Shown one piece after another: positions 35,385 through 62,062 of a DNA stretch of 64,000 nt. The translations under genes and the position numbers were made by a program. Positions within the stretch are counted from its first letter, which is position 1. Every line of letters starts with the position of its first letter. Source of the DNA: Cyanophora paradoxa CCMP329 (Eukaryota; Plantae; Glaucophyta); contig QPMI01000600.1 of NCBI GenBank assembly GCA_004431415.1, positions 1 to 64,000 on the forward strand, in the 5' to 3' direction. The notes beneath the pieces were generated by a model, which ran no database searches, had not been told where the DNA came from, and saw only the letters and a program-made list of their open reading frames with translations.

Positions 35385-36249
35385 CGCTTTGGAGAGTGCA
35401 GACTGCGGAAGGTTGGAATAAATGTTGATGAACGAGTAACAAAATCTGGATTCCTAAGAAATCTGTACAGGTTGATACTATTTGTAATATTAATTATATA
35501 ACTCTATAGTTATTTTGGTTGAGACGTCGGGGTACGGAAAATTTGCGGTAGCGCGACGATTACGGCGGCGCAGCGGGCCAGGTTTCCCACCCGTGGGTTC
35601 CTGATAACGCTGCGTGTCAAGCTGCTCGGAAAGTCGCGCGCCAGCTCCACCCGACCCCCGTAGCCAGAACGCGCTAGATAGACCAACCGGGCGTGCACGG
35701 ACAGCCGACACGAGCACATCATCACCAAGCGCAACCGCCGAAGTCGATAGCCCGCCCCCGGAGCGCCAGGCAGCCCCGCCAACCTCGCCGCGTCATCTTT
35801 TTTGAATTCCACGGACCCCCGGACCCCACCTGCGCCCTGCGCGGAGCGCAAAGCACTCGCCCTGCCTCTCCCGATAGAAGATAAGAGCTCTTAAGCAACT
35901 GAACTGCCGCCCAGTCCCCGCGCATTGCGCCTCGGTGCGGACACTCACTCGCTGCCTGTCACACCGCAGTCATGAGCCGATCATCCACGGACGACACACC
36001 GGATGTCGCCGCCATGCCCGGCGAACGACGTAGACCGTGCTTGCGCGACGCTCGCCGGCGCCAAGGCCCCGCGGGCCCACGCCCCCGCCCGCTTTCCCCC
36101 GGACTGGGCCCAAAGGGCGCCCACCTGGACTCCTCCCCCCCGAGGTCGGTACAGAAGCGTGTACGCTCGGACCCCCTGCCCCCCGTCCGCAGTCCGAGCC
36201 AGACGAGGCCCGCCCGGACCCGGCCTTCAAGCCGGCCCCCGCCCTCCCG

Positions 36250-36975
36250 CCCCAGCGCCCCGCCCTCGCCCTCCGGCTCCAGCGCCCCGCCCTCGCCTCC
36301 GGCTCCAGCGCCCGCCCTCGCCCTCCGGCTCCAGCGCCCCGTCCCCACCCTCCGGCTCCAGCGCCCCGCCCTCGCCCTCCTGCTCCAGCGCCCCGCCCCA
36401 CCCTCCGGCTCCAGCGCCCGCCCCGCCCTCCGGCTCCAGCGCCCCGCCCCGCCCTCCGGCTCCAGCGCCCCGCCCCGCCCTCCTGCTCCAGCGCCCCGCC
36501 CCGCCCTCCGGCTCCAGCGCCCCGCCCTCGCCCTCCTGCTCCAGCGCCCCGCCCCCACCCTCCGGCTCCAGCGCCCCGCCCCCGCCCTCCGGCTCCAGCG
36601 CCCCGCCCCCGCCCTCCTGCTCCAGCGCCCCGCCCCGCCCTCCGGCTCCAGCGCCCCGCCCCGCCCTCCGGCTCCCGCGCCCCGCCCCCGCCCTCCGGCT
36701 CCAACGCCCCGTCCCACCCTCCGGCTCCAGCGCCCCGCCCTCGCCCTCCGGCTCCAGCGCCCCGCCCTCGCCCTCCGGCTCCAGCGCCCCGTCCCCGCCC
36801 TCCTGCTCCAGCGCCCCGCCCCACCCTCCGGCTCCAGCGCCCCGCCCCCGCCCTCCGGCTCCAGCGCCCCGCCCCCGCCTCCGGCTCCAGCGCCCCGCCC
36901 CGCCCTCCGGCTCCAGCGCCCCGCCCCGCCCTCCGGCTCCAGCGCCCCGCCCCGCCCTCCGGCTCCAGCGCCTTG
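36250..36975. repeat. GC-rich minisatellite, unit ~26-27 bp (CCCTCCGGCTCCAGCGCCCCGCCCCG)
   Basis: More than 20 near-identical tandem units visible directly. Confidence 0.9.
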
Positions 36976-37229
36976 CCCCGCTCCTGGCCCGTCACCCTTC
37001 CCGCCCGCCCCCAGCTTCCCGATTCCAGCGCCTCACTCCCGCCACCCTCCAGCGCCCCGTGTACCCCACTCCCTGCCCTTCTCCCCCTCCCTACGCCTCG
37101 CCCCCTGCCGACCTCCCGTACCCCGCGTGCATGCGCCTCGCCTTCCCCCTCCCCTCCTTTTCCACAGGACCAAGGACACCAACGCATCAGGCCCTCCTCA
37201 AGCCGCAGATCGATAGCTCACAGCTAGGA

Positions 37230-43779: not shown

Positions 43780-46700
43780 TAGATCAGAGGTCCTCCTCGC
43801 GGACGGCGAAGAGGACGAAGTCGGGGGACGCGAGCACCTCCTCCCCGCTGCCCGGCCCCCGCCTCAGCGGGGTATAGCGGGTGATGTTAGCGGGGGCGGG
43901 GCGGGCCTGCGGAGGCGGGAGTAGCCCCTGCTCCAGAGCTCGGCGACGCGGGCGCCGAGGGCGGCCGAGGCGCGCGCCAGGAGGGCCTCCAGCGGCTCCC
44001 CCCGCCCCGCCCGCAGCCCCGCGTCCCGCGACCCGTCCAGCAGCCGCACCTGCGGAGAGGCGAGCATGATCATGAAGAAGGGAGGGGTGGGGGCAGGGCG
44101 GGCGCGGGCACGTTCACGTAGCGCCCGTCGTGCTCGGAGTCGACCGGCCGCGGGCCGGCCGCGAGGCGCCCGCACGGGACGCCAGCGGCGCCGGCTGCGG
44201 CTGCGGCTGCGGCGGGGCCGGCGCGGAGGCGGCGGAGGGGCCGGCAGCGGAGGGCCCGGGATCGATATCGAGCTCGCGGGCGGCGCGCGGGCTGCAGCTA
44301 GTGCTGGCGGGAGGGGCGCCGGGGCGGGGCCGGCAGGGCCGGCAGGGAGTTGCGCCGGGGCAGCGCGGGGATGCCGGGGCCGTCAGGAAGGGCGCGGGGC
44401 CGCGACCGGCGGTGCGGGGCCGCGACCGGCGGTGCGGGGGTCGCCGGGGCGATCTGAGGGCAGGTGGGCGCTGCAGGAGCCCCGGCGCCGGCCCCGCCCG
44501 GGCCCGGGCCCGGCGGGAATTTCTGGCGGGGGGTACAAGCCTCAGCCGCGAAGCCAGGGGGAAGAGCAACAAGGGGAGGCACGCGTGGGCCGGGGCCGCC
44601 GGCCGGGGGCGCCTCCGAGTGCGCGGGGCCGACCGCGGGCACAGTTGCAGCGTCCGGCGTGCGCCAGAGCTGAGGAGGGCGGGCCGTCATGAACAGGGGC
44701 GAGTCTCGCGCGAGGCACGCGCACTGCGGGTGGCGGGCCGAGCGGCGCCGGCACGCGGCTGGCGGTCCCAGAGTCGACGGGCACGGCCCCGGGCACAGCT
44801 TCGGGCACCTGGCGCCCCGTGAGATCGTCGAATTCGGAGCGAGGGATCCGGGGGGAGCTCGAGGCGGACCGGGGCGGGGGCGGCGTTGGGTCCCGGCTGG
44901 CGGTCGGAGCTGCCGACAAAGAACAGCTGCCGCGCGAGGGCGGGCGGCGGTCCTGGGCCGGGTCGGGCCGGGGCTGGGGCCGGGCCGGGGCCGGCGGCGG
45001 AGGCGGTGGCCCGACGGCCACGGCGACCGGCACCGGCGGCGGCGGCCGCGCGGGGAGGAGGCGGAGGGCCGGGGGGCGCCTGCGGCCTCACCAGCGCCAG
45101 GGCACCCCCGCCACCGCGGCGTCTGGGATCTGCGAGGCCGAGGCCGCCGGCGCGAGGGCGTGCCGGGCGGCGTGGGCCCCGAGCTAAAGCTCGGGGCGGG
45201 GCCGGAGTGCGGCGGGGCGGCCTGCAGGGCGTGGAGAGGGCGGGCCGAGCGGCAGCTGCGCATGTGGGCGCCGAGGCCGCGCAGGCCCGAGAGGCCCGGC
45301 ATGCCGCACAGCGCACAGTCCACAAACTGCGCGCCGGGCCGGGCGGGGGGCGGATGCGTCAGCTGCAGATCTAGAGCGCGGCGCGAGGGCGGCGCGCGCG
45401 AAGGAGAAAGGTCACCCAAGGCTCAGGGGCGGAGGAGGAGGATGAGGCGGCGGCAGCGGCGGCGGCAGCGGCGGCGGCGGTGAGGGCGGTGGGGCAGAGG
45501 TTGAAGTGCGCGCTGTGCTGGCGGCGCTCGACCATGGCCCCGCAGAACTGGCACGGAGCATGCCGGGGAGCGGGGCAGAGGTTGAAATGAGCGCTGTGCT
45601 GGCTCCCCGCAAGTTCCGTCCCGCAGAACTCGCACGGCGCCTTGGCCTGCGGGGGCGGCGCCGCCGCCGCGCCCGTCAGGGCCCTCGGCCCGTGGCCGAT
45701 CGCGACCCGGGCCCATCGGCATCGGGCGCGGGGCGGGGCGGGATGCACGTCGGGCGAGTCTTCGGCGGCCGCACCGGTGAGCGCCTGCTGCTGGCGCTCG
45801 TGTAACTGCACCGACCCAGTGAGGAGGCCGCCCGCGGGGCATACGAGGGACTCGAGCGCCGCGCGCCCCGCGCCGGCTGGCCTCGAGCTCGGCCGCACCT
45901 TCATTCGGTACCTCCACTTCACCTGCTCGGTTTTCATCGGATACGCGCGCGTGGGGCGCCGCGGCGCGCCGGCCCCGCCCGCGGCCCCCGCGGCCGCTGC
46001 CCCGCCGGCGCCCCCGACCCCGCCCGAATCCCCCTGGCCTTCCTCGCCCTCGTCGGCCTCCGCGTGCTGCTCCTTGAGCTTCTTCCCGGGCCCGGCGCTC
46101 TGCTTCTCCAGCCACACGCGCTTCCTCCCGCGGACCGCATGTGCCGCCGCCTGCGCGCGCCGCGGTCGGCTCCTATAGCTAGGCCTCGAGCCTTCGTCGC
46201 GGCGCTGGGCATGGCCATGGCGGCAGCGGGCCGGGGGTGCGGCACCGGGTCGGCCAAGTATTTGCGGCAGCCGCCCCTGAAGATGTGCCGCGCGATGCCC
46301 TGCAGACCCTGCCGCCCCGCCCGCCGTGAGCCCGGCGGGATCCGGTACCCGGTGCTAGCAGCGCCGCTGGAGCGCCCGTGCCAGCTAGGTCTAGAAGGCG
46401 GGACGGGTGATGCCGACCTTGAAGCCCTTCGCGCCGCAGTTGTTGCAGTCGGTGGGGGCGTAGGGCGCGCGTTGGAATTTGGGCCCCGCAACCGCGCAGG
46501 TGCGCAGGTGCCTGCCGGTGCGCGCGAGGGTGCCCCACTGAATAACCGCGAAATTGCGCGAAAATCAACCGATGGAGCTTCCACCTGCTGTACTCGTGGA
46601 GCAGCAGCTGCGCGGAGCAGAACTGGCAAGTCACCGGCCCCTGCGAGTCCCAGGAGCAGTCAGTTGCACGAATCGTGTGCGGAGAAACGGCGCGCCGAGC

Positions 46701-46916
46701 GCGGGCGCGCCGCGTCGATCGGGGTCGCGGGCTCTGCGGGACGCCCTCGCGGGGAGTCGGGCGCGGGCCCCGCCCCCGGCGCCGCCTCCGAACGGGGCGC
46801 GGGATCGCGAGCTCGAGCCCGCCTGGGCGCGCGATCGCGACCGGCCGCGGGGCCGCGCGAGGCGGGGGCCTCCAATCGGCGTCCAGCAGGCCGCCCGGGC
46901 CCACTACGCCGTCAGA

Positions 46917-46949
<33 letters not shown>

Positions 46950-49900
46950 CCAGTCAGCGTCCCAGTCAGCGTCGCGGTCCGCCGCTGCCACCGGCACGGG
47001 CGCTGGCGCTGGCGCGGGCGCGGGCCGGCTGATCCGCATGTCGATCAGCGCCTGCCGCGACGCGCGCGTCTGCGCCACGCGATCGCGGCGTCAGACCTCG
47101 CGCGCGAGCGAGAGGAGCAGGCGGAGGCCGCGGCCGCGCGCCCGCTCGTCCATGTTGGGTTCGCAGGCGCGGGAGAGGTGCGACCCCAGCCCCACGAGGC
47201 CCTGCGCCGAATTAAATGAAGCGAGCGGGGGCGGCGGTGAGATGGAGGGGCGGGCGGGGCACCTTCCAGCCGGTGAGGCCGCAGCGGGCGCAGGGGAAGC
47301 GGACGGGCAGGCCCGACGCCTCTGCCGCCGCAACCACGGCTGCAGGGCCGGTCAGCGCGCGCGGGGCCGGCGTCGCGATCGGGGAGGGGCAGGTCGAGCT
47401 CGAGCTCGGGGCGGGGGCGGTGGCGGGCCTTGCTGGGCGGCGCGGCAGACGGCGAAGTGGGCGCGGTGGCGCGTCAGGTAGAGCTCCTCCCCGCAGAACT
47501 GGCACGGCGCCTGCCGCATGCCGCAGATTGAGATTAAATGAAGACGAAGCCGAGGATCGAATTCGGGATCGCAGGGCGCACGAGCTCGTCGTCCTCCAGC
47601 TCGTTGAACGTGACGTCACCGTCCCCCAGCCCGCCCCCGCCCCCGAGCTCCGCCCCGGGCCCGACCTCGCCCGCGAAGCCGCCTTCGGACTCAAGCTCCC
47701 CGCCCCTGCCGGAGCCGGACACCCGCCTCCTCTGGTTCCTCTGCGGCGGCGCGGCTCAGCACCCGAGACCAGCCGCCGAACGCGGATGCGTGGCAGCGCA
47801 CCGAGGAGGCGTGCCCTGCCGCCGCCTCGGGGTCGGGGGAGGAGGAGGACTGCTCCGAGGGGCGCCGCTGCGCGTGCCTCTCCTTCACCTGCCCCCCAGC
47901 CCACAAGCTATTTGAGCGAATTCCAATATTTAATGAGCTCGAGCTCCGCGGGGGCGCTGGCGCGCCCTGTCGAAGGCAGACTTGGCGGCGCCCTCCTCCA
48001 GGATCCGCTGCCTCTGCAGCCTCTGCGCGGGCGGAAGCTGAAGGTTCAGCGGCTCTAATCGTTGACTTCAATAAGTACTTGGGCTGACCTCGTAGTCCTT
48101 CCAGTAGCGGAAGTGGCTGGGGCGGGCCGGACGCCCCGGCTGCGGGCTCGGGCTGCACGCCAGCAGGTGCTGCGCCAGCCTGCGGGTCTGGCGTCAGAGC
48201 GGCGCGGGCGGCTGCAGCTGCGCCCGGAAACTCGAAGAGACCGCGGCGCATGCGCACCCGGGGACGCCCTGCAGGTCGCCGGCGCCGCAGCGGGCGCAGT
48301 CGACGGGGCCGGCGCAGGCGGCGGCGGCGGGGCAGGCCGCCAGGTGCCGGGAGAGCTCGCCCCGGTCGGCCGCCCCCTCCCCGCACAGCTGGCACGCCTC
48401 GTTCTGCACTCGCGCCCAGCGATGATAAGCGGGCGGAATCGCCATCGAAATTATAGTCGGGCTCATGATCAGCAGCCGCGTCCGGGGATCAGGACGCATG
48501 CGCACCGGCCCCGGGGATCCGGAGGGCCCCATGGCCGGGCCTTGGGCGAAGCCCGCGGCCTCGCGGTCCTGCATTTAATCATGATCAGAATAAATTCAGA
48601 CGAACGAGCTCTAGAAATTTAGATGGCTGAATTCTAGATTTCGGCCGCGGCACGTTCTTGGCGCGAGGGATCCGGAGGGCGGCGGCTCGCCTCGGCGTTC
48701 GAGATTTCCTCGGGCGCTGGCGCCTCCAGCTGCAGGGGGGCCTGCGAGGGGGACGCGTCAGCTGCAGGGCCGGCGGGGCCGAGGCGCCCGCAGCTGGTCG
48801 CGAGCTCGAGGGGCCGCGTGCACATGTGCAGGGCGCGGCGCCGGCGTCGGGGACGGGGCGGGATCCGGAGCGGCGTCGTGCTGGACAATCGAGCAGCGCT
48901 TCCCCCGCTTGTGGGCGCGCGCCGCCGCGCACCTCGCCTGCGCGCGAGCCCGCGGCCGCGTGCGCTTGAGGCGGTTCCGGAGGCTCGGCGATTTCGCGCG
49001 AATCTCGAGGGCTACAGACCGCGTAAGCCTGGTCCTTGATGCGCTCCGGGTCGCAGAAGCGCATGTGGCGGCCCAGGCCAGTGAGCCCCAGCAGGCCCTG
49101 CGCGCCAACATTCATTAGAAGTTAGAACGCAGCTGCGGGGATGATTTGCGGCCCTTCGCGGCGCGCGCGGGCACCTCGGTGCCGCAGCGGCGGCAGCTGA
49201 GATGGACGGCGTCGGAGGACTGTGTGCACATGCCGAAGTGCTTGTGGTGCTTGGAGAGGGGGAGGCTGAGCCCGCAGAACTGGCACGGCGCCTGCCGCCG
49301 AAATTAATATTGGTCGCCGGAAACGAATTCGAACGACTCGGGCGAGCAGCGGAAATTAGAGTCCTGACTCGGGCGAGCAGCGGAAATTAGACTCCTAATT
49401 ATAATTACCTGGACACGTGCGCTCGTCGTGGTTTGCTCGCTACTAAAACTAGTACTGTTGCGAGCTTGAGTCGACGTCGCTGACTCGTCGACTCGCGACT
49501 CGCGATTCGCCGTGGGTTGCTCGCTGACGATGTTTGCGCGGCCGCTACTTATGAAGGAGCTGCAGAAGCGCATGTGGCGACCGAGGCCCAGCATCCCCTT
49601 GAGCCCCTGCGCATGCACATGCGCGCCGGAGGGGCGGCTTCAAATCTCGGGTCGGATGTCGATGAGACAGGCGGAGCTAGATCTAGCTGTAGTAAATGAA
49701 TATTAATTGGGGAGGCGGCGCGGGCCTGGGTGCCGCAGTGGAGGCAGGTCATGAAGGGCGCGGGGGCGGCCTTGGGGCAGGCGCCGAAGTGCTGGAAGTG
49801 CTGCGAGAGGAGCATCTCCTCCCCGCAGAACTGGCACGGCGCCTGCGAGGACGGGCGCGCGGGCGTCAGACGGAGCTCGAGGGGAGGGGCTCAAAGAAAT

Positions 49901-50540
49901 CGAATTTAATTCAATATTGGCACGCGGCGCCGGGCGGGGCGCCGGCGCACGCGGAGCCCCGCGCTGTCGAGCCCGGCGTACGAGCTCGCGACCCTCCTGT
50001 CGCCGGGCCTCTTGAGCGCCCCAAGCGTCCGCGCCGACGTGAAGGGGAGGCCGAGGCGAGCCCTGGATCTGGAGCCGCCGCGCCCCCCGCGGCCCCCGCG
50101 GCGCCTCTTGCGGCGCCGGCCGCGGAGGGAGCCGGCCTCGGAGCTGGAGCCGGAGCTAGTGCTGGAGTCCTCGAGCTCGGAGCCGTCGGCCTCCGCCGCT
50201 TCGAAGTCGCTGTCGGCGTCTAGATCTGCGTCTGCGCCGACGTCCTCCTCGAGCTCGCCGCCCTGGAGCTCGAGCTCGCCGCCGTGCGGGCCTCGAGCGT
50301 GCTCCTCGAGCTCCTCGCGCTCGTCTTCGAATTCCTCGCCGCCGCCTTCGAGCTCATGATCATGCGCGCGGTAGTCATCGCCGTCGATTTCGCCGTCGGA
50401 GCTCCTCTGATCGTCCGCCTCCTCGATCGCGCCGATCGCGGAGGGGAACTCGACCTCCTCCGGATCCGTCCCGTGCGCAGGCTCATCTACAGGTGCAACT
50501 TGCGGCTGCAGATCGAATCCGAGGCAGCGCAAAGAATTAT
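43780..50540 (-). CDS. Host multi-exon gene(s) with repeated C2HC-type zinc fingers (boundaries approximate)
   Basis: Repeated PCQFCG.......HF..CP and C..CG..GL.GL.GL..HMR.C modules. Last exons VRLLDGSRDAGLRAGRGEPLEALLARASAALG and FVLFAVREEDL. Confidence 0.55.
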
Positions 50541-52412
50541 AGTTAGCTCGCGGAGTCTCAATAAGGAGGCAATATCAAAATTAATGGGCAGGATTTAATT
50601 GCAGTTCACCGTCACCTCCTCGCCCTGTGGATTCGAATCCGGTTCGACCTTGACCTTGTGGATCCGGAGCTGGGAAGGCGAATTCGAAGGGTTTCGTTGC
50701 GTCGTCGAGCCTTCGCCGCTGGACGGACGTTATCGTTTGCAAAATCATGTGCAAGTAATATAAGCAGGACAGGAAAGAGCTTACGGAGGAACGATATTGA
50801 CGAACGTGCGACCAGCTGCAGAGATTCGCGGGGGATCTGGAATATTTGCAATTGACACGTGCACGGGCAGAGAGTCCAGCTGCAGCTCCACGTGATCATA
50901 GCTACAGGGCTGCTGCAGCTGCGACTGCCGGTTCCTGGCGGCGAACAGCCAGTTCAGTCTACGGCGGTGCGAAACCGACGGAAATCGGAAGAGGAGATCG
51001 AGCTAGAGCGGCGCACGATTTCGTGTGGGTGTGCGGCGCCGAAACAAAGCGTGCGCCGCTGCGGAAGCTCCAGGGGAATCCGGAGGGGCAGCTTGTGTCT
51101 ATATCCGAGCTCGAAGCAATCGCGCAAGAATTCGAGGCAGTGCAAGCAGCGCGAGCCTCCCGATCCGGATCCAGCGCGAGAACATTCCCTGCGCAGCAAA
51201 AGCACATGCACGTGTAATTACAAGCACGCTGCGCAGAGCTACCTCGCACCCTGAGCGAACAATTGCAAGCAAAGGAAATCGAAAGAACGTTTACGGACCT
51301 AAGCCTGATGGCTTGGGGAGCTCGAGCATTGCGAAGCCTGGTGGACTTCCCGGAGCGCGCGCATCGATATCTGCGTTCAAACGAGGTGTCAAAGCTCAAA
51401 TTCGACCGAAAAACAGACAGTTCTGTGATCCGATGATCGATTTCATCACGCCGACACTGTGACATGTGCAAACTCTTGAAAGGACCGGATCCGGAGCGCC
51501 GCGACAGCGCATCGCGATCAATATCATACATGCACGAGCGATCTCCGATTATGAAGAGCGGGTGCGCATGATCGGAGACAAGTTCAAGTGCCCGCAAATC
51601 AAACTCGAATTCGCAAGCTTAAGAAGTCCGAGCACGAATCGAAGTGGACGTCGACGTCGACGCAAGTGCATGGCCAGAGCACATTTAGAGAAAGCACGCG
51701 GCACATACCACGTTTGGGAAGAAGATCAAAAGCACCCAGCGTTCCGAAACTGGGTGGCTCTCGCGCCAATGCAGCGACGCCACTTTTGACGTCAAGCGAA
51801 TCTTGTTCTCCCGAGGAGCCCGCTCTGTGCAGCGAGCGAGAGCCATGTTAGATGTGCACTGTGATAATAGAGCTCACTATCAAGCTAAGGCGGCCTCGTG
51901 CATTTTGACAACCGCGCTTGACGTCGACGAGCCCAAGGCCCTGTGGCGCGCGCCAACCGGCGCGCTCCGCGAGCCTTGCAGGTGGTTCTACAGATGTTTA
52001 CGAGCAGTATCCGTGCGCGCACCTTGAGCCCGCGCTCATCGCTCGCCGCAGGTCGGTCAGAAATGAATGACGTGTCCCCCTCTCTTGCCCCCCCCCCCCC
52101 CACTTCTCCTCTCATTGCTTTTAATTGCTGCGCATGCTCCTCCGTTGCTGCAACTGTTCTGTGTGTCGTCGACATCTAAATGAGCTTGACAGCATGAAGC
52201 CATCGCACGCTCAGTCAAGAAAGCACACGATCTAGCAAGTGCTACTACGTACACGTGCAACGGATCGAGCTCGATCAACTGCAGCGATACAACTGCAGCG
52301 ATACAAATTATACTACTGACGCCGTAGTATGCACTATAAGCTCCCTAGAGAATCTGTTTCACATGACCCGAGATAAGATAAGAAGAGCCACTAGTAATAG
52401 CACTGCAGATCA

Positions 52413-53764
52413 CTACTGCACCGGAGGGGGGTACCCCGGAGGCTGGCCGTACTGGCCGGTGGGGGCTGGCGGGGGGTACCCGGGCGGCTGCTGGCCGGGC
52501 GGGGCGCCGTACTGGGGCGGTGGTGCCCCGTACGGAGCTCCATACTGTGGCGGCGGGGCCCCGTATTGGGCGGGGGGGTACCCATAACCCCCAGCTGGAG
52601 CGGCGGGGTACGCGCCAGGGTACCCGCCGACAGGTGCTGCGGCGTACGGGGCCGCCTGGTACGCGCCGCCGGACTGGTCGATGGGCTGGCCCATGGGTAC
52701 GCCCATGGCGGTGCCCGGCGCGGGGTACGCGCCGCCCGAGACGACGACGGTCTGGGACATGCCCATGCGGCGCCGCCGGTGGCGCACGTAGATGCAGACG
52801 GAGATCAGGGCGATCACGACGCCGACTGCGGGGCGGGGGAGGGGCGGCGGTCGGCGGCGGTGGCGGCGAGGGAGCGGGGCGCGGGGAGCGGAGCGGACCG
52901 GAGACGACGACGCCGATGACGATGGAGACCCAGCGCTGCGTCTCCGTGGAGAAGTCCTGCGCGCGCGCCTCAGGCCGGAGCGCCGAGCGGGGCGGGGCGG
53001 ACCGGCGGGGCGGGGCGGGCCGGCGGGGCGGGGGAGGGCAGGCGGGGCGGGGCGAGGCAAAGCTCACCCAGATGAAGCGCAGCAAGACTTCAAAATTTTG
53101 ATTCCTGCAGAGAGTGATCAAGCCAAGATCTTCGCAGCGCGCCGACTGCAATACCCGCCGCAATGACTGCGGACCTGTTAACGAGAACGATGTTGATGTT
53201 CGGCACGCCGTCGTCGGTCCAGTCGCTCTGGAGCCGCGTGAGGGGCGCAGCAATGCCGCGCCGCGGGAGAGTGCGCACGACAGCGATGTCCCTCTGCTGG
53301 TTAATGCGCGAGACGCGCGTCATGTAGCCTTCCGTGGGAAACCTCGTCGGGCTGTTCCGCAGCGCAGTGTACTGCGAGTCTGCGCGCTGGATTGAGAGAC
53401 GATGAATGCCCGCACGGAAATAGCAATGCACCGCTAAGCACAAGGATGTCGACTGCGGAAAGGCGCGGCGTGAGAGCTCGAGGCGACAGCGCGAGGGGCA
53501 GGACACACCTGGCCCCCGCACGGTGTAACGGCTGAGGTCCAGTTCATATCTCAACCAACACTTGCAGTTCTGCCGCCTCTGCGCGCGGCGCAGTGAGCTC
53601 TGGGCCGTACGCGTGTTCACAGCGCGTGCGCGGAGCACCTCCATCAAGTAGGCTGTGTTGGGCCTCAGAACTTCGGTCCATACGCCGTCCGCGTAAACCT
53701 TGACGATAATTGCCAGGACGGCGACGAGCAGAGCTAAGTACTTTACCCCGCCGCGGCGTGCCAT
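52413..53764 (-). CDS. Host type I membrane protein with PGY-rich cytoplasmic tail
   Basis: Signal-peptide-like N-terminus, TM segment VGVVIALISVCIYV followed by RHRRRR, and GYPP/QYGAPP repeats. Confidence 0.6.
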
Positions 53765-53805
53765 GTTAGATGTGCGCTTTGATAATAGAGCTCACTATTA
53801 AGCTA

Positions 53806-53866
53806 CGATGCTGCGATTACGCATACGGCGTATCGATGTTGCGATTACGATGCTGCGATTACGATT
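53806..53866 (-). repeat. Three GCGATTACG repeats, inverted relative to the array at 59164-59500
   Basis: GCGATTACG(AT) x3 is the reverse complement of (AT)CGTAATCGC. Confidence 0.8.
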
Positions 53867-54179: not shown

Positions 54180-54917
54180 ATGTCGGTCTGCCCTTCCGCC
54201 TGCGCTGCCGCGCGCGCCCTTCTCCGCGTTTGACGTCACGATTGCAGGGCGGGCGCCCGCCGGACAAGGGCGCCCGATCGCCGGGCTCCGATCCCGATCC
54301 TGACGCCGACACCTGTGGCGTGTGCGGGTGAGGGCGCTCGCCTCTTCCCGCGTGGGGGTTGGGGGTTGGATTCGATCCCGGGGTCATGCAGGAATGCGTC
54401 CGGTGGCCACTGGATCCAGTGCGAAGGCGAGTGCAAGGGCTGGTTTCACTGCAGGTGCGTCTCCCCGCGCGTTGACGTTTGCCCGGCCCGGCGCGCGCCC
54501 GGTCTCTGACTGTCCTCAAAAAAGGTGCGTTAGAGTCTCGGCGAGGGAGGCGGAAGCCATCGAGAGCTGGGTGTGCCCGAAGTGCGGCGAGCTTCCAGCC
54601 CGAGCGCCCGTGAGTGCCCCCCCGCGCCCGATCGCCCGCTCCCCCTCGCCCTCCGATCTCACGCGCTTCGTGCGCAGGCTCCCGACGCTGCAGTTGGAGC
54701 CGCTCGGGATGCGCAGGCGGGCTCCTCGAGCTCCGGCCAGCGGGGGGCGGCGGCGAGCACCTCTGAGGGGGGCAAGCGGCCTCTCTCGCCCGCGCCGGGC
54801 CCCTCCGACGTCGACCAGAAAAGGTCCCGTCGGGGCCGGGCCGAAGGCGGTCGGGGCAAGCGGGGGGCCCCGCAAGGCGCCCCCAAGGCCGGCGCCGATG
54901 AGAAACGGGCTCGGCGG

Positions 54918-54967
<50 letters not shown>

Positions 54968-56482
54968 AGGTGGCGGCGGCGGCGGAGGTGGCGGCGGCGG
55001 GGGGGTCGGCGCGAGGGGCGCCGGCTGCGGCGGTTGCAGCGGGCCGATCCCCGCCAACGAGCACGGCGCCGTGCGCTGTGCGGGACCGCGCGGGCGCGGA
55101 CGCTGCGGCGCCGCCCACCACGAGTGTTGCCGCGATCTGGCTCCGTTCAAGGGCGTCGTTGAGCTCCAGCCGGGGCGCTGGCGGGCCCAGCTCGCCGTAC
55201 CTGGAGAATCGCAGCCGGCGGTCAGCGATGGTCACCTTTCGCCCGTCGCGGCGGCCAAGGCGTACGACCGCATGGTCATCGCCCTGATCGGCCCCGAGCG
55301 GGCCAAGGAGGAGGGCCGCACGAACTTCCCGCCGGCCGTCTATCTCTGCGAGCCGTTCCTCCGGAAACCTTGGAAGCCGCCGTTGGATGCCAAGGTGCGC
55401 AGAGGGGCGCGCACGGGTCCCCTTTAGGGTCCCGTTTAACCCCCGCCCTCTCCTCGCCCCCAGGCCAGGCTGCAAGAGGTCGTCGATGCCGTCGCTGCGC
55501 TGGACGCGGAGCGGGCACGGGGAGAGGAGGAGGCGGTGAAGCGGCGGGCCAAGGCGAGGGGCGACAAGGCGAGGCGGGCGGCGGAGAGGGAGGCCAAGGC
55601 GGAGGCACGGGGGGCGGGGCGGGGCTCCAACGACGGCGCCCCGCACCACAAGTACAGGGGCGTCAGGCGCTACGCGGAGGTCTCCCGGGTCTACTCCTGG
55701 AGGGCTGAGCACGAGTTCATGGGCCTCACGGTGCTCGCGCCCCCCCTCTCGAGCTCGCATCCTCCCCCGCCGCTGCTGACCTCGGCCTCCCCCCCGCGCA
55801 GCTGCACCTCGGGACCTTTGGGGCGCCCGTCTCCGCCGCGCGGGCCGTCGATCGCGCGGTCATCGTCCTGCGCGGTGCCGAGGAGGCGAGCTCGAGGGGG
55901 CTCACCAACTTCCCCGTCGCCGGCTACCTCTGCGAGCCCTCCCTGCGGAGGCTCCTCGCCCCAAAGGGGCCCGCCATCGGCTCCCGCCACCCCGACATCG
56001 TCGCGGCGCACGCCGGCGGGGGTGGGGGCGGCGGTCCTCCGCCGGAGGGCGTCGTGGTGCGTCCCCTCCCTCCCTCCCCTTCTCAGGGGTCCCGGCGGGT
56101 CGTGATTCCTTCGTGATTCCTTTCGCAGCGCGCGGTGCAGGCGGCCGTCGGCGCCCTCCTCGCCGCGAGGCGGCCGGGCGGGGGCGAGAGGGGCCGCTGG
56201 TACTGCCCCTGCTGCCGCCTGGACGCCGGCGCTGCGGCCGTCGCCGCATACATGCGGACGAAGTACAGGCTGTGCGCGCCTCTCGCCCCCGCCCTCCCTC
56301 CGCCGCGCCCGCCCGCTCTCCGTCTGACCGGCCGCGCGCCTTCCCCCTGCGGCAGGCGTTTCAAGGCGGAGCACGTGCAGCCCCACATCGCGGCGGCCGC
56401 GGAGCGCACGGGCTACTTCTGGGAGCTGCTGCGCGCCGCGAAGCCCGCCCTCGAGTTCTACGCCAGGGGGGTCTCCGCGTGA
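54180..56482 (+). CDS. PHD finger plus two AP2-like domains (N-terminal part of the probable Fanzor fusion)
   Basis: Spliced CGVCG..WIQCEGECKGWFHCRCV..WVCPKC (PHD). FKGV..GRWRAQ..AAKAYD..TNFP and KYRGVR..WRA..HLGTF..AARAVD..TNFP (AP2). Confidence 0.8.
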
Positions 56483-56900
56483 AGCAGGCCTCGGAATCCG
56501 TGCGCCCTTCCCCCCCCCCCTCCCCCCCCCCGTACCCCTGTCTCGTCCCTTCACTCCTTCGAAACCCTGACTCCTTCGAACGGGGGCAGCTCTACCGCCC
56601 CGTCAAGCCCCCCCCACCCTCCTCGAGCCCTCTCTCCCCCTCAAGCTCTCCCGGGCCAGACCCCCCCGGCCCCCCCCGGCTGAAGGTCGTGAAACCCGAG
56701 GGGTGGGATCCCCTCACGCGGCGCCGCTTCGGCGACGGCGTGAGGCACGGCGTCAAGATGTACAGGACGGATCCGCTGGCGAGGTGGGAGAGCGTGCGGG
56801 GCGCCGTCGAGAGCTGCAGTGCGCGGACGTACCCCCCCTCCGACTCCCCGACCCCCTCCTCACCTCCCCAAAACCTCATTGTACCCCCTCCTTCGCCCAG

Positions 56901-59635
56901 TTGAAGAGGAGGCGAGGGCAGAGGCTGCCCGGCGCGCGGAGGAGCGGGAGGAGGAGCGGAGGGCGGCGGAGGCCGCGGGCGTGTCGAAGGTGGAGCTGAA
57001 GAGGCGGGAGGCGGCGAGAGCAAAGGCCGAGGCGGCCGAGGCGGCCGAGGCGGCGAAGCCGCGCCTGGCGACGCTCGTGTACGTCCTCCGGCGCTGCTGC
57101 CTCGAGGGCGAGACGAGGGACCGGATCTGGCGGGAGATCGTGGCGGCCGCCATCGTCTACAACGCCTGCATCGGCCTCATCAAGCTCCACCGCTGGGTGC
57201 GTGCCGGCCCCTGCCCGAGGGGGCGCGTTGCTGACGCCCGGCGCGCGCGCTTCGCCTCCCCTGTCCCCCAGATCGTCAACGACCTGAGCCAGAATGCAGC
57301 GCGCAACCTGCTGCATCGTGCCTTCGCCAACGTGCACACCTACACCGGCGACCGCGCGGCTCCTCGGCGCGCTGCCTCGGACGGGGCGTCCGAGGCGTGG
57401 GCGGGGCTGTCCGAGGAGGTGACGGAGGAGGGCCGCTACGACCTCGTCATCGCGGGGCGGGGGGCGATGCTCGCCGAGCTGGGCCCCGAGGAGAGGCGCT
57501 GCTTCCACGGGGCGCTCATGCACACGCGGGAGGCGGCGGCGGACGACGCGCTGAGGGCGGCGAGGGACCAGATCGCGCGGGGCAAGCCGCTCAAGAACCT
57601 CAAGTGCGTGTCGTTGGAGGGGTGGGGGGTGGGGGTGGGGGGGGGGCCTCCTCGCTCGCCCCGAAACCGATCTCGCCTTCCCCTCTCGTGCAGGGATCGC
57701 AGCCTGCGGCGGCGGCAGTGCTCCGTCGTCGTCAAGTCCGCTGACTACAAGAAGGGTCTCGGGGCCCACTGGGGCTTCCTCAAGATGCTCCCCACGCACG
57801 ACGGGCCCCTGCCGTCCACGATCGAGCACGACGCGCGGCTCGTCCTGAAGCCCAGCGGGAGCGTGTGGTGCGTGTCAACTTCCCACTCCTTCCCAGCCCC
57901 TCCTTTCGCTTCGCTCTCGTTGAGCGTGGGGTGCGTCGCAGGTTCTGCATCCCCGTCGAAATGGAGAAGGCGCGCGCGGCCCGCACGACGAGGGTCATGG
58001 CGCGGACCTTGCCGGCGGAGGGCGCCTGCGCGGCGAAGACGACGGAGGCCCGCACCGTGCCGGCGACCTCTCGCCGGCGGAGCCCCAGGGACCCGGCGGG
58101 CGACGGGGGCGACCGCGAGTCCGAGCTGGCCCGCGAGGCCTGGCTGGAGCTCCGCGGCAAGTCCCTCGTCGCCGTCGACCCGGGCTCCCGCAAGCTCATC
58201 TCCTGCTTCTGCCCGGACGGGCGGGCCTTCGAGGTGCGGTGGTCTCGCCTCCCCCTTCTCCCCCTTTCCGTGCCCGCTGATGCCCCTCCCCGCGCAGTTC
58301 GGTGCTGGTCTCTCTCACGCACGGGAGCCCGCACTGAGGCGGGCGGCGGCGCTCATGGCCAAGTCGGAGCTGAAGCCGGGCCCCGCTGCGTGCGCCCCCC
58401 CCCCCCCCCCCCCCCCCCCCTCCCTCCTTCCTCCCTCCCTCCCTCCCTCCCTCTCTCTCCCTCAATCGGTTTGCCAGGGGCGGGTCGGGCGGGTCGGCCC
58501 CGCTCAGCGCTCGCACGCGCCGCCGGCTGCGGAAGAAGGCGCTCCGGTTGATCGAGCACGAGCGCAACGTGGGGCTGGACGCCCTGCGCGTCATCGCGCG
58601 GTGCGCCCCCCTGGGTGCTGCAGCCTCTGCGCGCGTGGCCTCTGCGGTTGACACCCCCCCAGGTTCCTCGTGGAGAACTTCGACTACATCATCATCCCGG
58701 AGTTCCGCACGAGCGAGATGGTGCGCTAGTGCGATCGACGTCGGCCCTCCCCCCCTCCTCCGTTCTTCCGCTTAACGTAGGCAACGGGGCGGCAGGTGCG
58801 GCGCAAGGGGCGGATTCTCGGGCCCGCCGCTGCGCGCCAGCTGCTCTACTGCCGCCACTATGAGTGAGGGCGACTGATTCTGGTTCTGGTTCCGGGGTGG
58901 GGCTCACTGCTCGCCCGTCGCCCCTCCCCCCGCCCACAGGTTCCGCTGCATCCTGCAGCAGGCCGCCCTGCACCGCCCGGAGTGCACGGTGCTCCTCGTC
59001 TCCGAGCACTACACCTCCAAGACCTGCGGGGCGTGCGGGTGTCTCCACACGGAGCTCGGCGCGGACGAGACGTTCCGCTGCCCGAGCTGCCCGGCGGAGA
59101 TGGACCGGGACCTCCAGGCCGCCAGGTGAGTGAATTGACTAGTCGTAGTCAATTCACCTCTATATCGTAATCGCAACCTCCGCTAGAATCGTAATCGCAA
59201 CCTCCGCTAGAATCGTAATCGCAACCTCCGCTAGAATCGTAATCGCACACCTCTATAGCTTAACGTCCTTAAATCGTAATCGCACACCTCTATAGCTTAA
59301 CGTCCTTAAATCGTAATCGCAACCTCGGCCCCTTCAATCGTAATCGCAACCTCCGCTATAGCTGAACTAGTAGAATCGTAATCGCGGGCGTAAATCTATG
59401 ACCGCCGTTAGTAAACATTAAGTTTATATCCTAATCTTAACCTGTTGAAATCTAATCGCGATCGATGTCTCGTAATCGCAACCTGACCGTCTGTAATCGC
59501 ATGCGCAGGAACATCCTCCTGCGGTTCCTCTCGGGCGTGGACGCGGGGCTCCGCCTCAAGCCCCTTCTGCTGGCCGGCTCCGGCCCGCGGCGGGCCAGCC
59601 CCGCCCCCCAAGCTGCGGCGCAGGCCGCGTCGTAG
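56901..59635 (+). CDS. Intron-containing Fanzor2/TnpB-like RNA-guided endonuclease
   Basis: Spliced exons give AIVYNACI (HTH/REC), HDARL..WFCIP (WED), AVDPGSRK (RuvC-I), FDYIIIPEF, RHYEFR, VSEHYTSKTCGACG..FRCPSC (RuvC-II, Zn ribbon) and DRDLQAARNILL (RuvC-III). Confidence 0.9.
59164..59500 (+). repeat. ATCGTAATCGC repeat array inside the last Fanzor intron (59126-59508)
   Basis: Eight exact 11-mers plus partial copies, with 24-38 bp periodicity among the exact copies. Preceded by a perfect 12-bp hairpin at 59130-59157. Confidence 0.9.
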
Positions 59636-59760
59636 TTTAGGCAGGATAGGGGGACCGCGTACCCCCCTACAGCGGGCCCTGCCTGCGTTGCCCGCAGGCT
59701 TGTCGCCCCCGTAGGTAGCACAGACCCAGCTCAAGCTCCTGCGATGTCCGCAGCTAGCAT
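59636..59760 (+). ncRNA. Candidate Fanzor omegaRNA scaffold (3-prime boundary uncertain)
   Basis: Nested stems AGGCAGG/CCTGCCT around TAGGGGG/CCCCCTA, plus GCCTGCG/CGCAGGC, directly after the Fanzor stop, where omegaRNAs are normally encoded. Confidence 0.5.
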
Positions 59761-60145
59761 GCCTGTGTTATCAATGCGCTAAGAAGTACGGAGCTAGACC
59801 GTGTGGCGGCAGTGCTGGCAGTGGCAATCCACACAGCAGCACGATGACAAATGAAGCTGGCCTGCGCGCGACAGGCCGCTCCCCGTGCCTCTTCCGCGTT
59901 GGGAGCTCGACTTGCACGCGGTGCTCCAAGCGTGGTGAACTTTCGCGCTGGGCTCCTTGTGGCGCACGCTTTCTGCTTCGATGACTTGCTGCTCTGATGA
60001 CTTTTTTTCTACGAAGCGTGTACCCGTGCTGGCGTAGGCCAACGCAACGTAGCTTCAAGCTCGGCCGAGCATTCCGCAGTGCTCGTTCGACGCCGGCTTT
60101 GTAGGCGCTTCAGCAGGCTGCGCACGGCAGCTCGCGGCGGCGCAC

Positions 60146-62062
60146 GTGGCGCTTGAGTTCCCGAGCATAGCTGAGCGCCTGAACACGACGCCGGCAGCCG
60201 AAGGCGCGCTCGTCGTAGCCGAGCTCAACGAGTCGAGCGCCGCAGCCGACCAGCATGAGCTGCTGGATCCCGAGCAGCAGAACCAAGGCGGAGGAGGTCG
60301 AGCGAAAGATTCTGCAGCGGGCCCTCGATCAGCCGTTTGAGATCGGGGCCTGCGCATCGGGCTCTCATATAAAACATCTCGTCGCTGGCCGGCCCGGGGC
60401 GCCCACGCTCGTCCTCCTCGTGCGACCGCTCCCGCATTTGCTTGTCAGGCCGACCGCGCCTCGTGCCCACGCCCGCGCGCTTGTGCAGCACGGCTTCGGG
60501 AGCGGAAAGGCGACGTTCTACAAGAATCTCCCCGCACTCGCCAACAAGTTCTGCGTGTATTCCGTGGACTGGTGCGCACGCGGCCGCGCTCCGAGGCTCC
60601 TGCTCGCGCCGCGCGGGGCCTTGGAGCGGACCGGCGCGCAGGCTGAACAACATCGACGGGGACGCCGCGAAGCGCTTCAAGTCGACGGAGAGCGCGGAGG
60701 ACTTTTTCATCGAAGCGCTTGAGGCGCGGCCCGGCGCGCCGGGCGGCGGCCGCTCCCTCCGGCTAACCCGCCCACGATCAGGTTTGGCGCAAGAATATGA
60801 AGCTGGAAAGGTTCATCCTACTGGGTCACTCGCTCGGGGGGTACATCGCGTCCCTGTACACGATCCGGTACCCGGCGGCGGTCGAGCGCCTCATTCTCGC
60901 CTCGCCGGCCGGCGTCGCCCCCAAGTACCCCTCCCAGTCTCTCTCTGCTGCTTGCCTCCCTTCGTCCTGACGTTCCTTCGGCCAGACCCCCGGAGGCGGA
61001 CCCGAAGAACGTACCCCTCATCTGGCGTATCGTCCGCTCGGCCTGGGACAAGGGTACCCTGCGTCTAGCCACGGCCCTTTCGTGTCCTTGATCGACCTTC
61101 CCAGGGTACACCCCGCAAGGGATCATTCGGGCGGTCGGCCCGCTGGTCCGCCCCGCCGCCCCGCCCCTCTTTCCAGTCCCCACCCCGACTCCCGCGGCTC
61201 TGCAGGGACCCAAGCTGGTGCCCAGGGCGGCACGCTGGGGTACACGAGGGCGGCACGTGCCTGAGAGGGGATGCGCAGGTCAACATGTTCATCCAACGGC
61301 GCTTCCCCGAGCTTCCTGAGGAGGAGAAGGACGACCTCCGCGAGTACGGTGCGCAGTACCCCCCGGCCCTCCCTTCCACCCCCTTCCCACCGTCCCGCCC
61401 TGCCATTCCGACCGCGTACCCCCCTTTGCGCAGTCTACCACCAGATGGCCCAGCCCGGGGACCACACCTACCTCGCCGCGTTCCTCGCGCCGGTGCCCCC
61501 CTCCCTCCAGGGCTGCGCCCGCCGGGGCGCGAGGGGCGGCGCAGGGCGCGTGGGGCCGCAACCCGCTGGAGCACCGCCTGAGGGAGCTCACCGTCCCCAC
61601 CGTCTTCATCTACGGGGAGGTGCGGTACCCCCGCCACGCCCGTTCCCGTACCCCCTCACAAGCGCGCCAGAGCGACTGGATGGACTGGCGCGCCGGCGAG
61701 CGCGCGCGGCAGACGGTGCGGCTCTGAGCTTCCCCTTACGCTTCTCCACGGCTGCCCCGCCCGCCCGCCGAGGCGCCCTTTCGGGCCAGCAGATGACCGT
61801 GCCGACGGCCCTTCACAAGCTCCAGGACGCAGGCCACCAGCTCTACATCGAGGTCCGTCCCTTCATTCTTTCGCGTGGGGCCTTTTGTTGGCGCGCAGCT
61901 GAGCGCGGGCCCGGGCCGTCCGCAGAACCCGGAGGGCTTCACGCAGCTCCTCCTGCAGATCCTGGGGGAGCCCCTCGCGAGGGCCGGCTCGGCGTCGACG
62001 AGGCCCGCGGGCCGGCCCGCCCCCACCGCCGGCGCCGCCATCCCCTCCTGAACCCCGCGTGA
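60146..62062 (+). CDS. Host alpha/beta hydrolase, ABHD4/ABHD5 (CGI-58/Cld1)-like, multi-exon (start uncertain)
   Basis: HGFGSG, YSVDW, LLGHSLGGYI..LILASPAG, IYGE.DWMD and AGHQLYIENP motifs. Confidence 0.85.

Follow-up and report, generated by a model that had tools for sequence, protein, structure and literature searches.

Can a eukaryotic RNA-guided nuclease carry chromatin-reading and DNA-binding domains of its own? The question is raised by a locus of the glaucophyte alga Cyanophora paradoxa CCMP329, which lies within the 64,000-nucleotide (nt) stretch of contig QPMI01000600.1 (GenBank assembly GCA_004431415.1) that was analysed here and that we call the window. A sequence-only reading of this DNA had proposed that a PHD finger, two AP2-like domains and a Fanzor2 nuclease form one protein, interrupted only by a run of six guanines (G6). 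We find that the gene is apparently expressed and spliced, and that the interruption is very probably an error of the assembly. Below we follow the reading frame, the domains, the relatives of the protein and the setting of the gene, and then weigh what the unusual front end might do.

Reading frame and splicing of the gene

As assembled, the locus is divided into two frames. The first encodes 580 amino acids (aa) and closes at a TGA at 56480, just after the G-run, and exons 10–20 form an open frame of 658 aa; one extra base in the G-run gives a product of 1,245 aa when the joined exon model is translated. The 20-exon model (54180–59635) closes with 19 introns, all GT-AG, which agrees with the earlier estimate of about 19 introns with mostly GTGCG donors and CAG acceptors: the donors comprise 13 GTGCG, four GTGAG, one GTCTG and one GTGCT, and the acceptors 18 CAG and one AAG. 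With the exception of the last intron (383 nt) the introns measure 62–90 nt, and short introns in GC-rich DNA are typical of the region.

Read-derived contigs were compared with the window over 55040–58390, a stretch flanked by the GGC run on one side and the C run on the other. Seven guanines (G7) stand in each contig that spans the G-run. The inserted G, behind 56465, is present at full depth in both a DNA-like run (X1, 97.5/97.5) and an RNA-like run (X15, 42.7/42.7); runs X12 and X16 have no contig at the site. Contig joints that agree with introns 5, 6, 7, 8, 9, 10, 11, 13 and 14 are confined to the RNA-like runs X15 and X16 and are lacking from the DNA-like runs. Overlapping contigs connect AP2-like domain 1 (AP2-1) to RuvC-I, as a path rather than as a single molecule.

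The closest proteins are the C. paradoxa EukProt gene models P0001 (597 aa) and P0002 (1,600 aa), which belong to one 90% cluster. Both are ~95% identical to the window protein and differ from it at scattered residues; they are therefore other copies, of the kind that the sequence-only reading suggested looking for. These copies help to assign contig 20 of X15 (710 nt), which contains the last 96 nt of exon 9, skips 56500–56589 at a GT..AG boundary and continues through exons 10 and 11, the placement of the extra G on this contig being deduced from the common depth (42.7) and length. Contig 20 has no other letter differences from the window copy over 56590–56818 and 56901–57195, whereas exons 10–11 of P0002 depart from that copy at six residues and exon 11 of P0001 at two. 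The transcript is therefore of the window type. Furthermore, P0002 reads through the G-run with exactly the peptide that had been predicted for one additional G, and the frame beyond the G-run is kept in the distant paralogs P0004 and P0031, which are 35–40% identical here and share invariant residues on both sides. The earlier proposal that G6 is the sole break, and that a single frame rather than two genes is encoded, is borne out by these data, and we hold with high confidence that one fused product spans the G-run.

Could this copy nonetheless be truly G6, and broken? It would then encode only the 580-aa product, without a nuclease, and the G7 transcripts would come from a near-identical sister copy. 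Contigs collapse paralogs, and a private G6 could hide among them, just as the alleles of this copy at 56920, 56929 and 56991 are missing from the DNA contigs. However, the G7 RNA contig matches this copy over just those stretches in which both annotated paralogs differ, and also where the DNA contigs do, and a homopolymer short by one base is a typical error of long-read assembly, so that we consider a broken copy improbable. Two neighbouring genes, one for PHD-AP2 that closes at 56482 and another for the Fanzor, or a frame rescued without an indel by a phase-0 GT donor at 56471, would accommodate the stop as assembled, but deserve hardly any credence given that the observed joint runs from 56499 to 56590 with G7 on the same contig, that no observed joint starts at 56471, and that the peptide skipped by this donor is conserved in the distant paralogs. 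Ribosomal frameshifting at the G-run was likewise rejected; there is no slippery heptamer, and G7 makes it unneeded.

Some features of these data limit what they say about a single continuous transcript. The contig comparison began downstream of exons 1–4 and the GGC linker and ended before exons 16–20, and the P0002 gene model shifts frame within that linker. The designation of runs as RNA is a guess, though one in keeping with the intron joints occurring only in X15 and X16. Contigs also lose rare alleles, may be chimeric among paralogs and cannot prove one transcript. The link of the first PHD finger (PHD1) to the rest of the protein is drawn from exon 5 (717 nt), which is open in this copy, and from the P0002 model.

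The last intron has an in-frame stop directly after its donor, and the gene models P0001, P0002 and P0003 all stop or go wrong at this point; a long intron is therefore probably common to the family. Retention of this intron would end the protein just before a conserved NILL helix and so remove it, a possible switch.

Nuclease and front-end domains

The full Fanzor2/TnpB-like nuclease of the sequence-only reading was recovered by sequence, profile and fold searches, all of which rank the Fanzor2 structure 9B0L (ApmFz2 of mimivirus) first. In the profile search 9B0L was matched at E = 3e-60 with no Fanzor1 match. IS607_TnpB was matched at E = 2e-6, under its cut-off; the TNB domain in exon 19 is matched by Pfam at E = 3e-13. 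An AlphaFold2 model of the nuclease part of a paralog (predicted local distance difference test, pLDDT, 80) found Fanzor2, TnpB and Cas12f in Foldseek. Its top match was again ApmFz2 (E = 1e-13, template modelling score 0.58–0.61), with the Fanzor1 SpuFz1 at E = 6e-6 and Fanzor1 at rank 25 or lower. By profile and modelled fold, the nuclease is a Fanzor2, nearer to ApmFz2 and IS607 TnpB than to SpuFz1 and GtFz1.

All three codons of the proposed catalytic triad were verified, namely RuvC-I D58177, the alternative E59004 and RuvC-III D59109, and an inert proline occupies the canonical RuvC-II site at 58697. According to two studies (PMC10530073, PMC13565253), the rearranged RuvC-II of Fanzors has Pro or Gly at the canonical site and an alternative Glu six residues before the zinc finger, and P58697 and E59004 show this same arrangement. 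The motif given for Fanzor and TnpB proteins in another paper (PMC3627910), D-X(125-275)-[TS][TS]-x-x-C4 zinc finger-X(5-50)-RD, appears here as VDPG ... TSKTCGAC ... CPSC ... DRD. Across 80 homologs there is no variation at the RuvC-I Asp (D297), the alternative Glu (E448) or any of the four zinc cysteines, and hardly any at the Pro of the canonical RuvC-II position or at the RuvC-III Asp; E59004 lines up with E467 of ApmFz2. The rearranged triad and the nuclease are intact in sequence, and cutting is predicted.

For the front end, domain searches were done exon by exon, with the natural paralog P0002 as a stand-in for the whole protein. The exon-wise Pfam scans returned only the TNB domain and a weak PHD match because the domains are intron-split or diverged. 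In P0002 the PHD finger that had been claimed passes the Pfam cut-off (E = 6e-6, 26.5 bits against a cut-off of 24), and the three PHD1 exons of the window are 26/26, 19/20 and 27/28 identical to it (96%). The nearest solved structures are ALFIN-like, KDM5 and BPTF fingers. Both tryptophan positions line up with the KDM5B and ALFIN-like PHD fingers, where they are the cage pair of readers of histone H3 trimethylated at lysine 4 (H3K4me3), and PHD1 may be such a reader. Of the two AP2-like domains, the second (AP2-2) is homologous to solved AP2 domains, a family marked by YRG and RAYD elements, and AP2-1 is linked to them via AP2-2.

The 'CxCC module' of the sequence-only reading lies where it had been placed, after AP2-2, as a W-x-C-x2-C motif at 56198–56215. 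Its identity is probably a different one, however. Together with the half finger at 55026–55130 it completes eight PHD ligands, which suggests that it is the C-terminal half of a second PHD finger (PHD2), overlooked earlier, that the AP2 pair has split. One AP2 domain and a helix lie between the two halves in P0004, and only ~55 low-complexity residues in P0031. The P0031 halves have a weak likeness to PHD fingers (Pfam E = 0.004; both match the PHF21A PHD at E = 2; atlas neighbours are PHD at ~0.79). The N-terminal half at 55026–55130 by itself gave no Pfam match. The helical module after W-x-C-x2-C had no relative in the atlas, metagenome or viral collections. Word-index searches with the AP2 region also gave no match, but the same searches missed the known relative P0004 and are of little weight.

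The Cyanophora family and its probable mobile element

Unnoticed by the sequence-only reading, the protein belongs to a Cyanophora family whose members differ in their N-terminal cargo. At least three copies are ~95% alike. P0002 ends in 430 aa of flavin reductase, most likely a run-on of the gene model beyond the long last intron. Among the distant paralogs, P0004 (tig00021617_g22932; 1,839 aa) combines a USP deubiquitinase, zf-CW, the split finger, one AP2-like domain, C2H2-like fingers, HRDC and an intact-looking Fanzor2, and P0031 (tig00000912_g5430; 1,449 aa) has the split finger and Fanzor2 without an AP2 domain. Long insertions interrupt the P0031 nuclease, both ahead of RuvC-I and on the way from there to the bridge helix. 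Cargo (USP, zf-CW, PHD, AP2, HRDC) has been swapped on one nuclease lineage among these paralogs.

Among the 150 best of 4,007 relatives, from 1.84 billion representatives, proteins longer than 800 aa come only from Cyanophora. A PHD or AP2 match was found in 0 of 80 alignment members, of which the 77 non-trimmed ones were scanned full length and three Cyanophora rows were trimmed. In a quick tree calculated without P0003 and P0005, four Cyanophora proteins fall on one side of a branch with a support of 89, which is no proof of a clade. Such front ends thus seem to be limited, among the relatives compared, to a Cyanophora group with varying cargo, a restriction that has to be read against the poor sampling of glaucophytes. 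The picture suggested is that of a lineage-specific family in which the finger and helical module were gained once and the chromatin cargo has been shuffled since. Three relatives whose genomic context was examined lie on gene-dense contigs without called introns, which would fit giant viruses.

The motif ATCGTAATCGCA has 11 matches in the window against 0.23 expected, and inverted arrays of it bracket the gene, one upstream (53812–53865) and one inside the last intron. At the start of this intron stands a perfect hairpin of 12 base pairs (bp; z = -5.4). A 46-nt piece upstream has just two copies in the window (53760–53805 and 51842–51887) and represents the terminus of an element or else a 5' region that has been duplicated. 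It starts exactly at the ATG of a minus-strand open reading frame (ORF; 53090–53764). The copy at 51842 was considered as an empty-site paralog and rejected, as its flank does not resume downstream of the gene. The gene is flanked by this minus-strand host ORF and by an alpha/beta-hydrolase gene (Abhydrolase matches at 60785–60925). No transposase or serine recombinase (IS607 TnpA) was detected in the gene region or the neighbouring ORFs tested, by searches of low sensitivity on intron-split genes, and scans of public collections for the tail and repeat-array patterns found no match.

Taken together, this is probably the single gene of a young, multi-copy and probably non-autonomous mobile element of C. 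paradoxa. Of the two options that the sequence-only reading had put forward, a chromatin-state-aware nuclease and a transposon regulator/nuclease fusion, the multi-copy, repeat-flanked setting favours the second, a selfish-element protein. The features of the locus are collected in Table 1.

Table 1. Features of the Fanzor2 locus (positions in the window).
Feature	Positions	Strand	Basis
Gene for a ~1,245-aa protein with PHD, probable split PHD holding two AP2-like domains, and Fanzor2; 20 exons	54180..59635	+	Exon model and read-derived contigs
PHD finger 1, exons 2-4, C4-H-C3, with the two cage Trp residues of KDM5 PHD3	54314..54585	+	Pfam PHD on paralog, PDB matches
Basic stretches resembling nuclear localisation signals (NLS) and 29-residue glycine run (GGC repeat)	54774..55004	+	Sequence; NLS function putative
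N-terminal half of probable second PHD (C-x2-C ... C ... C-x4-H-x2-C)	55026..55130	+	Ligand spacing; homologous stretch in P0004, P0031
AP2-like domain 1, divergent	55146..55331	+	40% identity to AP2-like domain 2, E 2e-15
AP2-like domain 2, exons 6-7	55650..55915	+	WRI1 AP2 E 4.5e-6; ERF096 E 9e-4
W-x-C-x2-C motif and helical module of Cyanophora giant Fanzors, spanning the G-run	56198..56610	+	35-40% identity among three paralogs
G6 homopolymer; contigs show G7	56466..56471	+	Read-derived contigs; paralog reads through
Charged E/R/A-rich helix preceding the nuclease	56901..57055	+	Sequence
Fanzor2 nuclease: WED, REC, RuvC, TNB zinc finger	57056..59530	+	Pfam, profile, alignment, fold
Last intron, 383 nt, AT-richer, with perfect 12-bp hairpin (59130-59157) and 9 ATCGTAATCGCA copies	59126..59508	+	Motif count, hairpin z = -5.4
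Array of 3 ATCGTAATCGCA copies, inverted relative to the last-intron array	53812..53865	-	Motif search
46-nt piece, candidate left element end	53760..53805	.	93% identity over 46 nt to 51842-51887, E 3e-15
Expected omegaRNA site and right end	59636..59830	+	Position by analogy to Fanzor loci

Possible roles of the front end and known systems

What might a front end of this kind do for a mobile element? Our preferred reading, which as a whole we hold at about an even chance, is that of a selfish-element homing nuclease whose front end holds it to chromatin or DNA. One nuclear protein of ~1,245 aa would unite a Fanzor2 RNA-guided nuclease with captured chromatin and DNA-binding domains. By analogy with its family, an omegaRNA made across the right end would draw its guide from the flanking DNA, and the complex would cut donor sites that lack the element, which repair would then copy back in (restorative homing). 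Cutting of omegaRNA-named empty sites by Fanzor or TnpB, after which repair restores the element, is described in PMC13565253. The least certain step is that PHD1 would bind methylated H3K4 and the AP2 pair grip DNA, which may keep the nuclease on open gene-rich chromatin and aid its reach to nucleosome-covered targets. The front end would then be a tether rather than an on/off sensor.

Several results detract from this proposal. The pair of AP2-like domains in the sequence-only reading stands by the homology described above but does not reach the Pfam AP2 cut-off: AP2-2 falls under it (E = 0.0055; 17.4 bits against 33.3) and AP2-1 is without a direct Pfam or PDB match. AlphaFold2 prediction of the N-terminal region from three sequences was uninformative (pLDDT 46). 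At the right end no omegaRNA signal was found, since shuffled versions of the sequence downstream of the stop fold equally well and Rfam returned nothing for it, and the sole terminal match (53774–53785/59768–59779; 11/12) is at chance level (E = 3.6).

Two other functions of the front end are conceivable, each with clearly lower probability. In the first, tentative at best, the enzyme would be a dual-key nuclease in which the RNA guide picks the sequence and the PHD and AP2 domains license cutting by chromatin state or beside the element's own arrays. If true, the Cyanophora family would represent a modular series (PHD, zf-CW, USP, AP2) of the adaptation of RNA-guided nucleases to nucleosomes. 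The second, which we entertain with similar reserve, is that the front end acts on the termini of the element itself, with the AP2 pair binding the ATCGTAATCGCA arrays for autoregulation, end pairing or recruitment of a transposase encoded elsewhere. The inverted orientation of the arrays around the gene and their excess over chance favour this idea, and an array within an intron would let the last exon and omegaRNA extend to the element end. Such arrays resemble the subterminal protein-binding arrays of DNA transposons, and enzymes of mobile elements are known to use AP2 folds for binding DNA. However, ATCGTAATCGCA is unlike any AP2 site known to us, the paralog P0031 has no AP2 domain, and the arrays could equally be sites of a partner transposase or part of an unrelated inserted repeat.

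It is unlikely that the front end is captured host sequence without a role in the nuclease, comparable to the gene fragments captured by Helitrons or Pack-MULEs. The paralogs do differ strongly in their cargo, and this reading would also suit the split second PHD, the degenerate AP2 domains and the low-complexity linkers. Yet ~680 codons are open and spliced in at least two copies, the zinc ligands and helical module are kept across paralogs at 35–40% identity, and the cargo is consistently chromatin-related. Still harder to sustain is host domestication, as an RNA-guided chromatin regulator or genome-defence nuclease with guides from dispersed right-end copies. The gene is apparently expressed and carries reader domains, and the genome contains endogenous viruses, one of them inside this window; but an active selfish element is what one would expect to show several young copies ~95% alike, repeat arrays at its flanks and an intact triad, and no ortholog was found outside Cyanophora in relative, atlas, metagenome and viral searches. 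The homing nuclease held to chromatin or DNA by its front end remains the reading that we prefer.

The endogenous virus of the window is Polinton-like and occupies 6236–34141. It is AT-rich (~39% GC), has perfect terminal inverted repeats (arms of 675 and 191 nt), and encodes a protein-primed DNA polymerase B with an endonuclease VII-like insert, an rve integrase, a primase/helicase, a patatin, two C1q-domain proteins and a 1,095-aa tail-repeat/H-lectin protein. Elsewhere, a minus-strand gene at 44300–50400 contains several repeats of a unit that resembles a zinc finger, C-x2-C ... H ... C (families D7, D14 and D16), without a Pfam match on its unspliced ORFs, and a GC-rich 26/53-nt tandem array of ~28 units lies at 36235–36981.

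The window nuclease shares the WED-REC-RuvC-zinc finger layout of known Fanzor2 proteins (ApmFz2/ApmFNuc, PDB 9B0L; NlovFz2; MmeFz2), and like them it is inert at the canonical RuvC-II position and has its alternative Glu directly ahead of the zinc finger (PMC10530073, PMC13565253). However, while Fanzor2 proteins have ~500 aa, the window protein has ~1,245 aa, is encoded with 19 introns and bears ~680 extra N-terminal residues with PHD and AP2. The N-terminal domain of ApmFz2 is only ~80 aa long and reinforces the core (PMC11832414); the front end described here is far longer. The setting differs from that of IS607 elements in that no serine recombinase was seen beside this Fanzor2. Fanzor2 has been reported from non-autonomous, non-IS607 elements of the alga Chloropicon primus and of molluscs (10.1101/2023.08.09.552727), where, as here, it is the only gene of a multi-copy eukaryotic element without its own transposase. 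Those elements have clear terminal inverted repeats and target duplications and no reported reader domains, whereas at our locus only inverted short-motif arrays were seen, one of them intronic.

The Fanzor1 CrFNuc of the Chlamydomonas Helitron2, whose activity could not be reconstituted, is also algal, intron-rich and multi-copy, and its elements have hairpins and short inverted repeats close to their ends (PMC10530073, PMC3627910). The window enzyme differs in being a Fanzor2, no RepHel gene was found with it, and a PHD or AP2 fusion of CrFNuc is not reported. The adaptations of Fanzors to eukaryotes that have been described comprise introns, nuclear localisation signals and small structural extensions (PMC10530073, PMC11832414). 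With subscription journals thinly covered, we found no paper that pairs Fanzor with Cyanophora and no PHD or AP2 fusion in the accessible text of the main Fanzor papers. The architecture had been thought undescribed, and we came across the PHD-AP2-AP2-Fanzor2 layout in no paper of the searchable literature and in no other organism.

If the fusion works as proposed, it would be the first natural case found of an RNA-guided nuclease with its own chromatin-targeting modules. Two questions about Fanzors become testable with it: how they gain access to target sites within chromatin, and of what use they are to the elements that carry them. In the RAG2 PHD, the chromodomain integrases and the HNH-AP2 homing endonucleases, a reader or DNA-binding module steers a DNA-cutting enzyme derived from a mobile element. 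Unlike these protein-targeted enzymes, the window nuclease is predicted to be RNA-guided and would combine two layers of targeting in one chain, which would make it and its relatives natural counterparts of the reader-nuclease fusions hand-built for genome editing.

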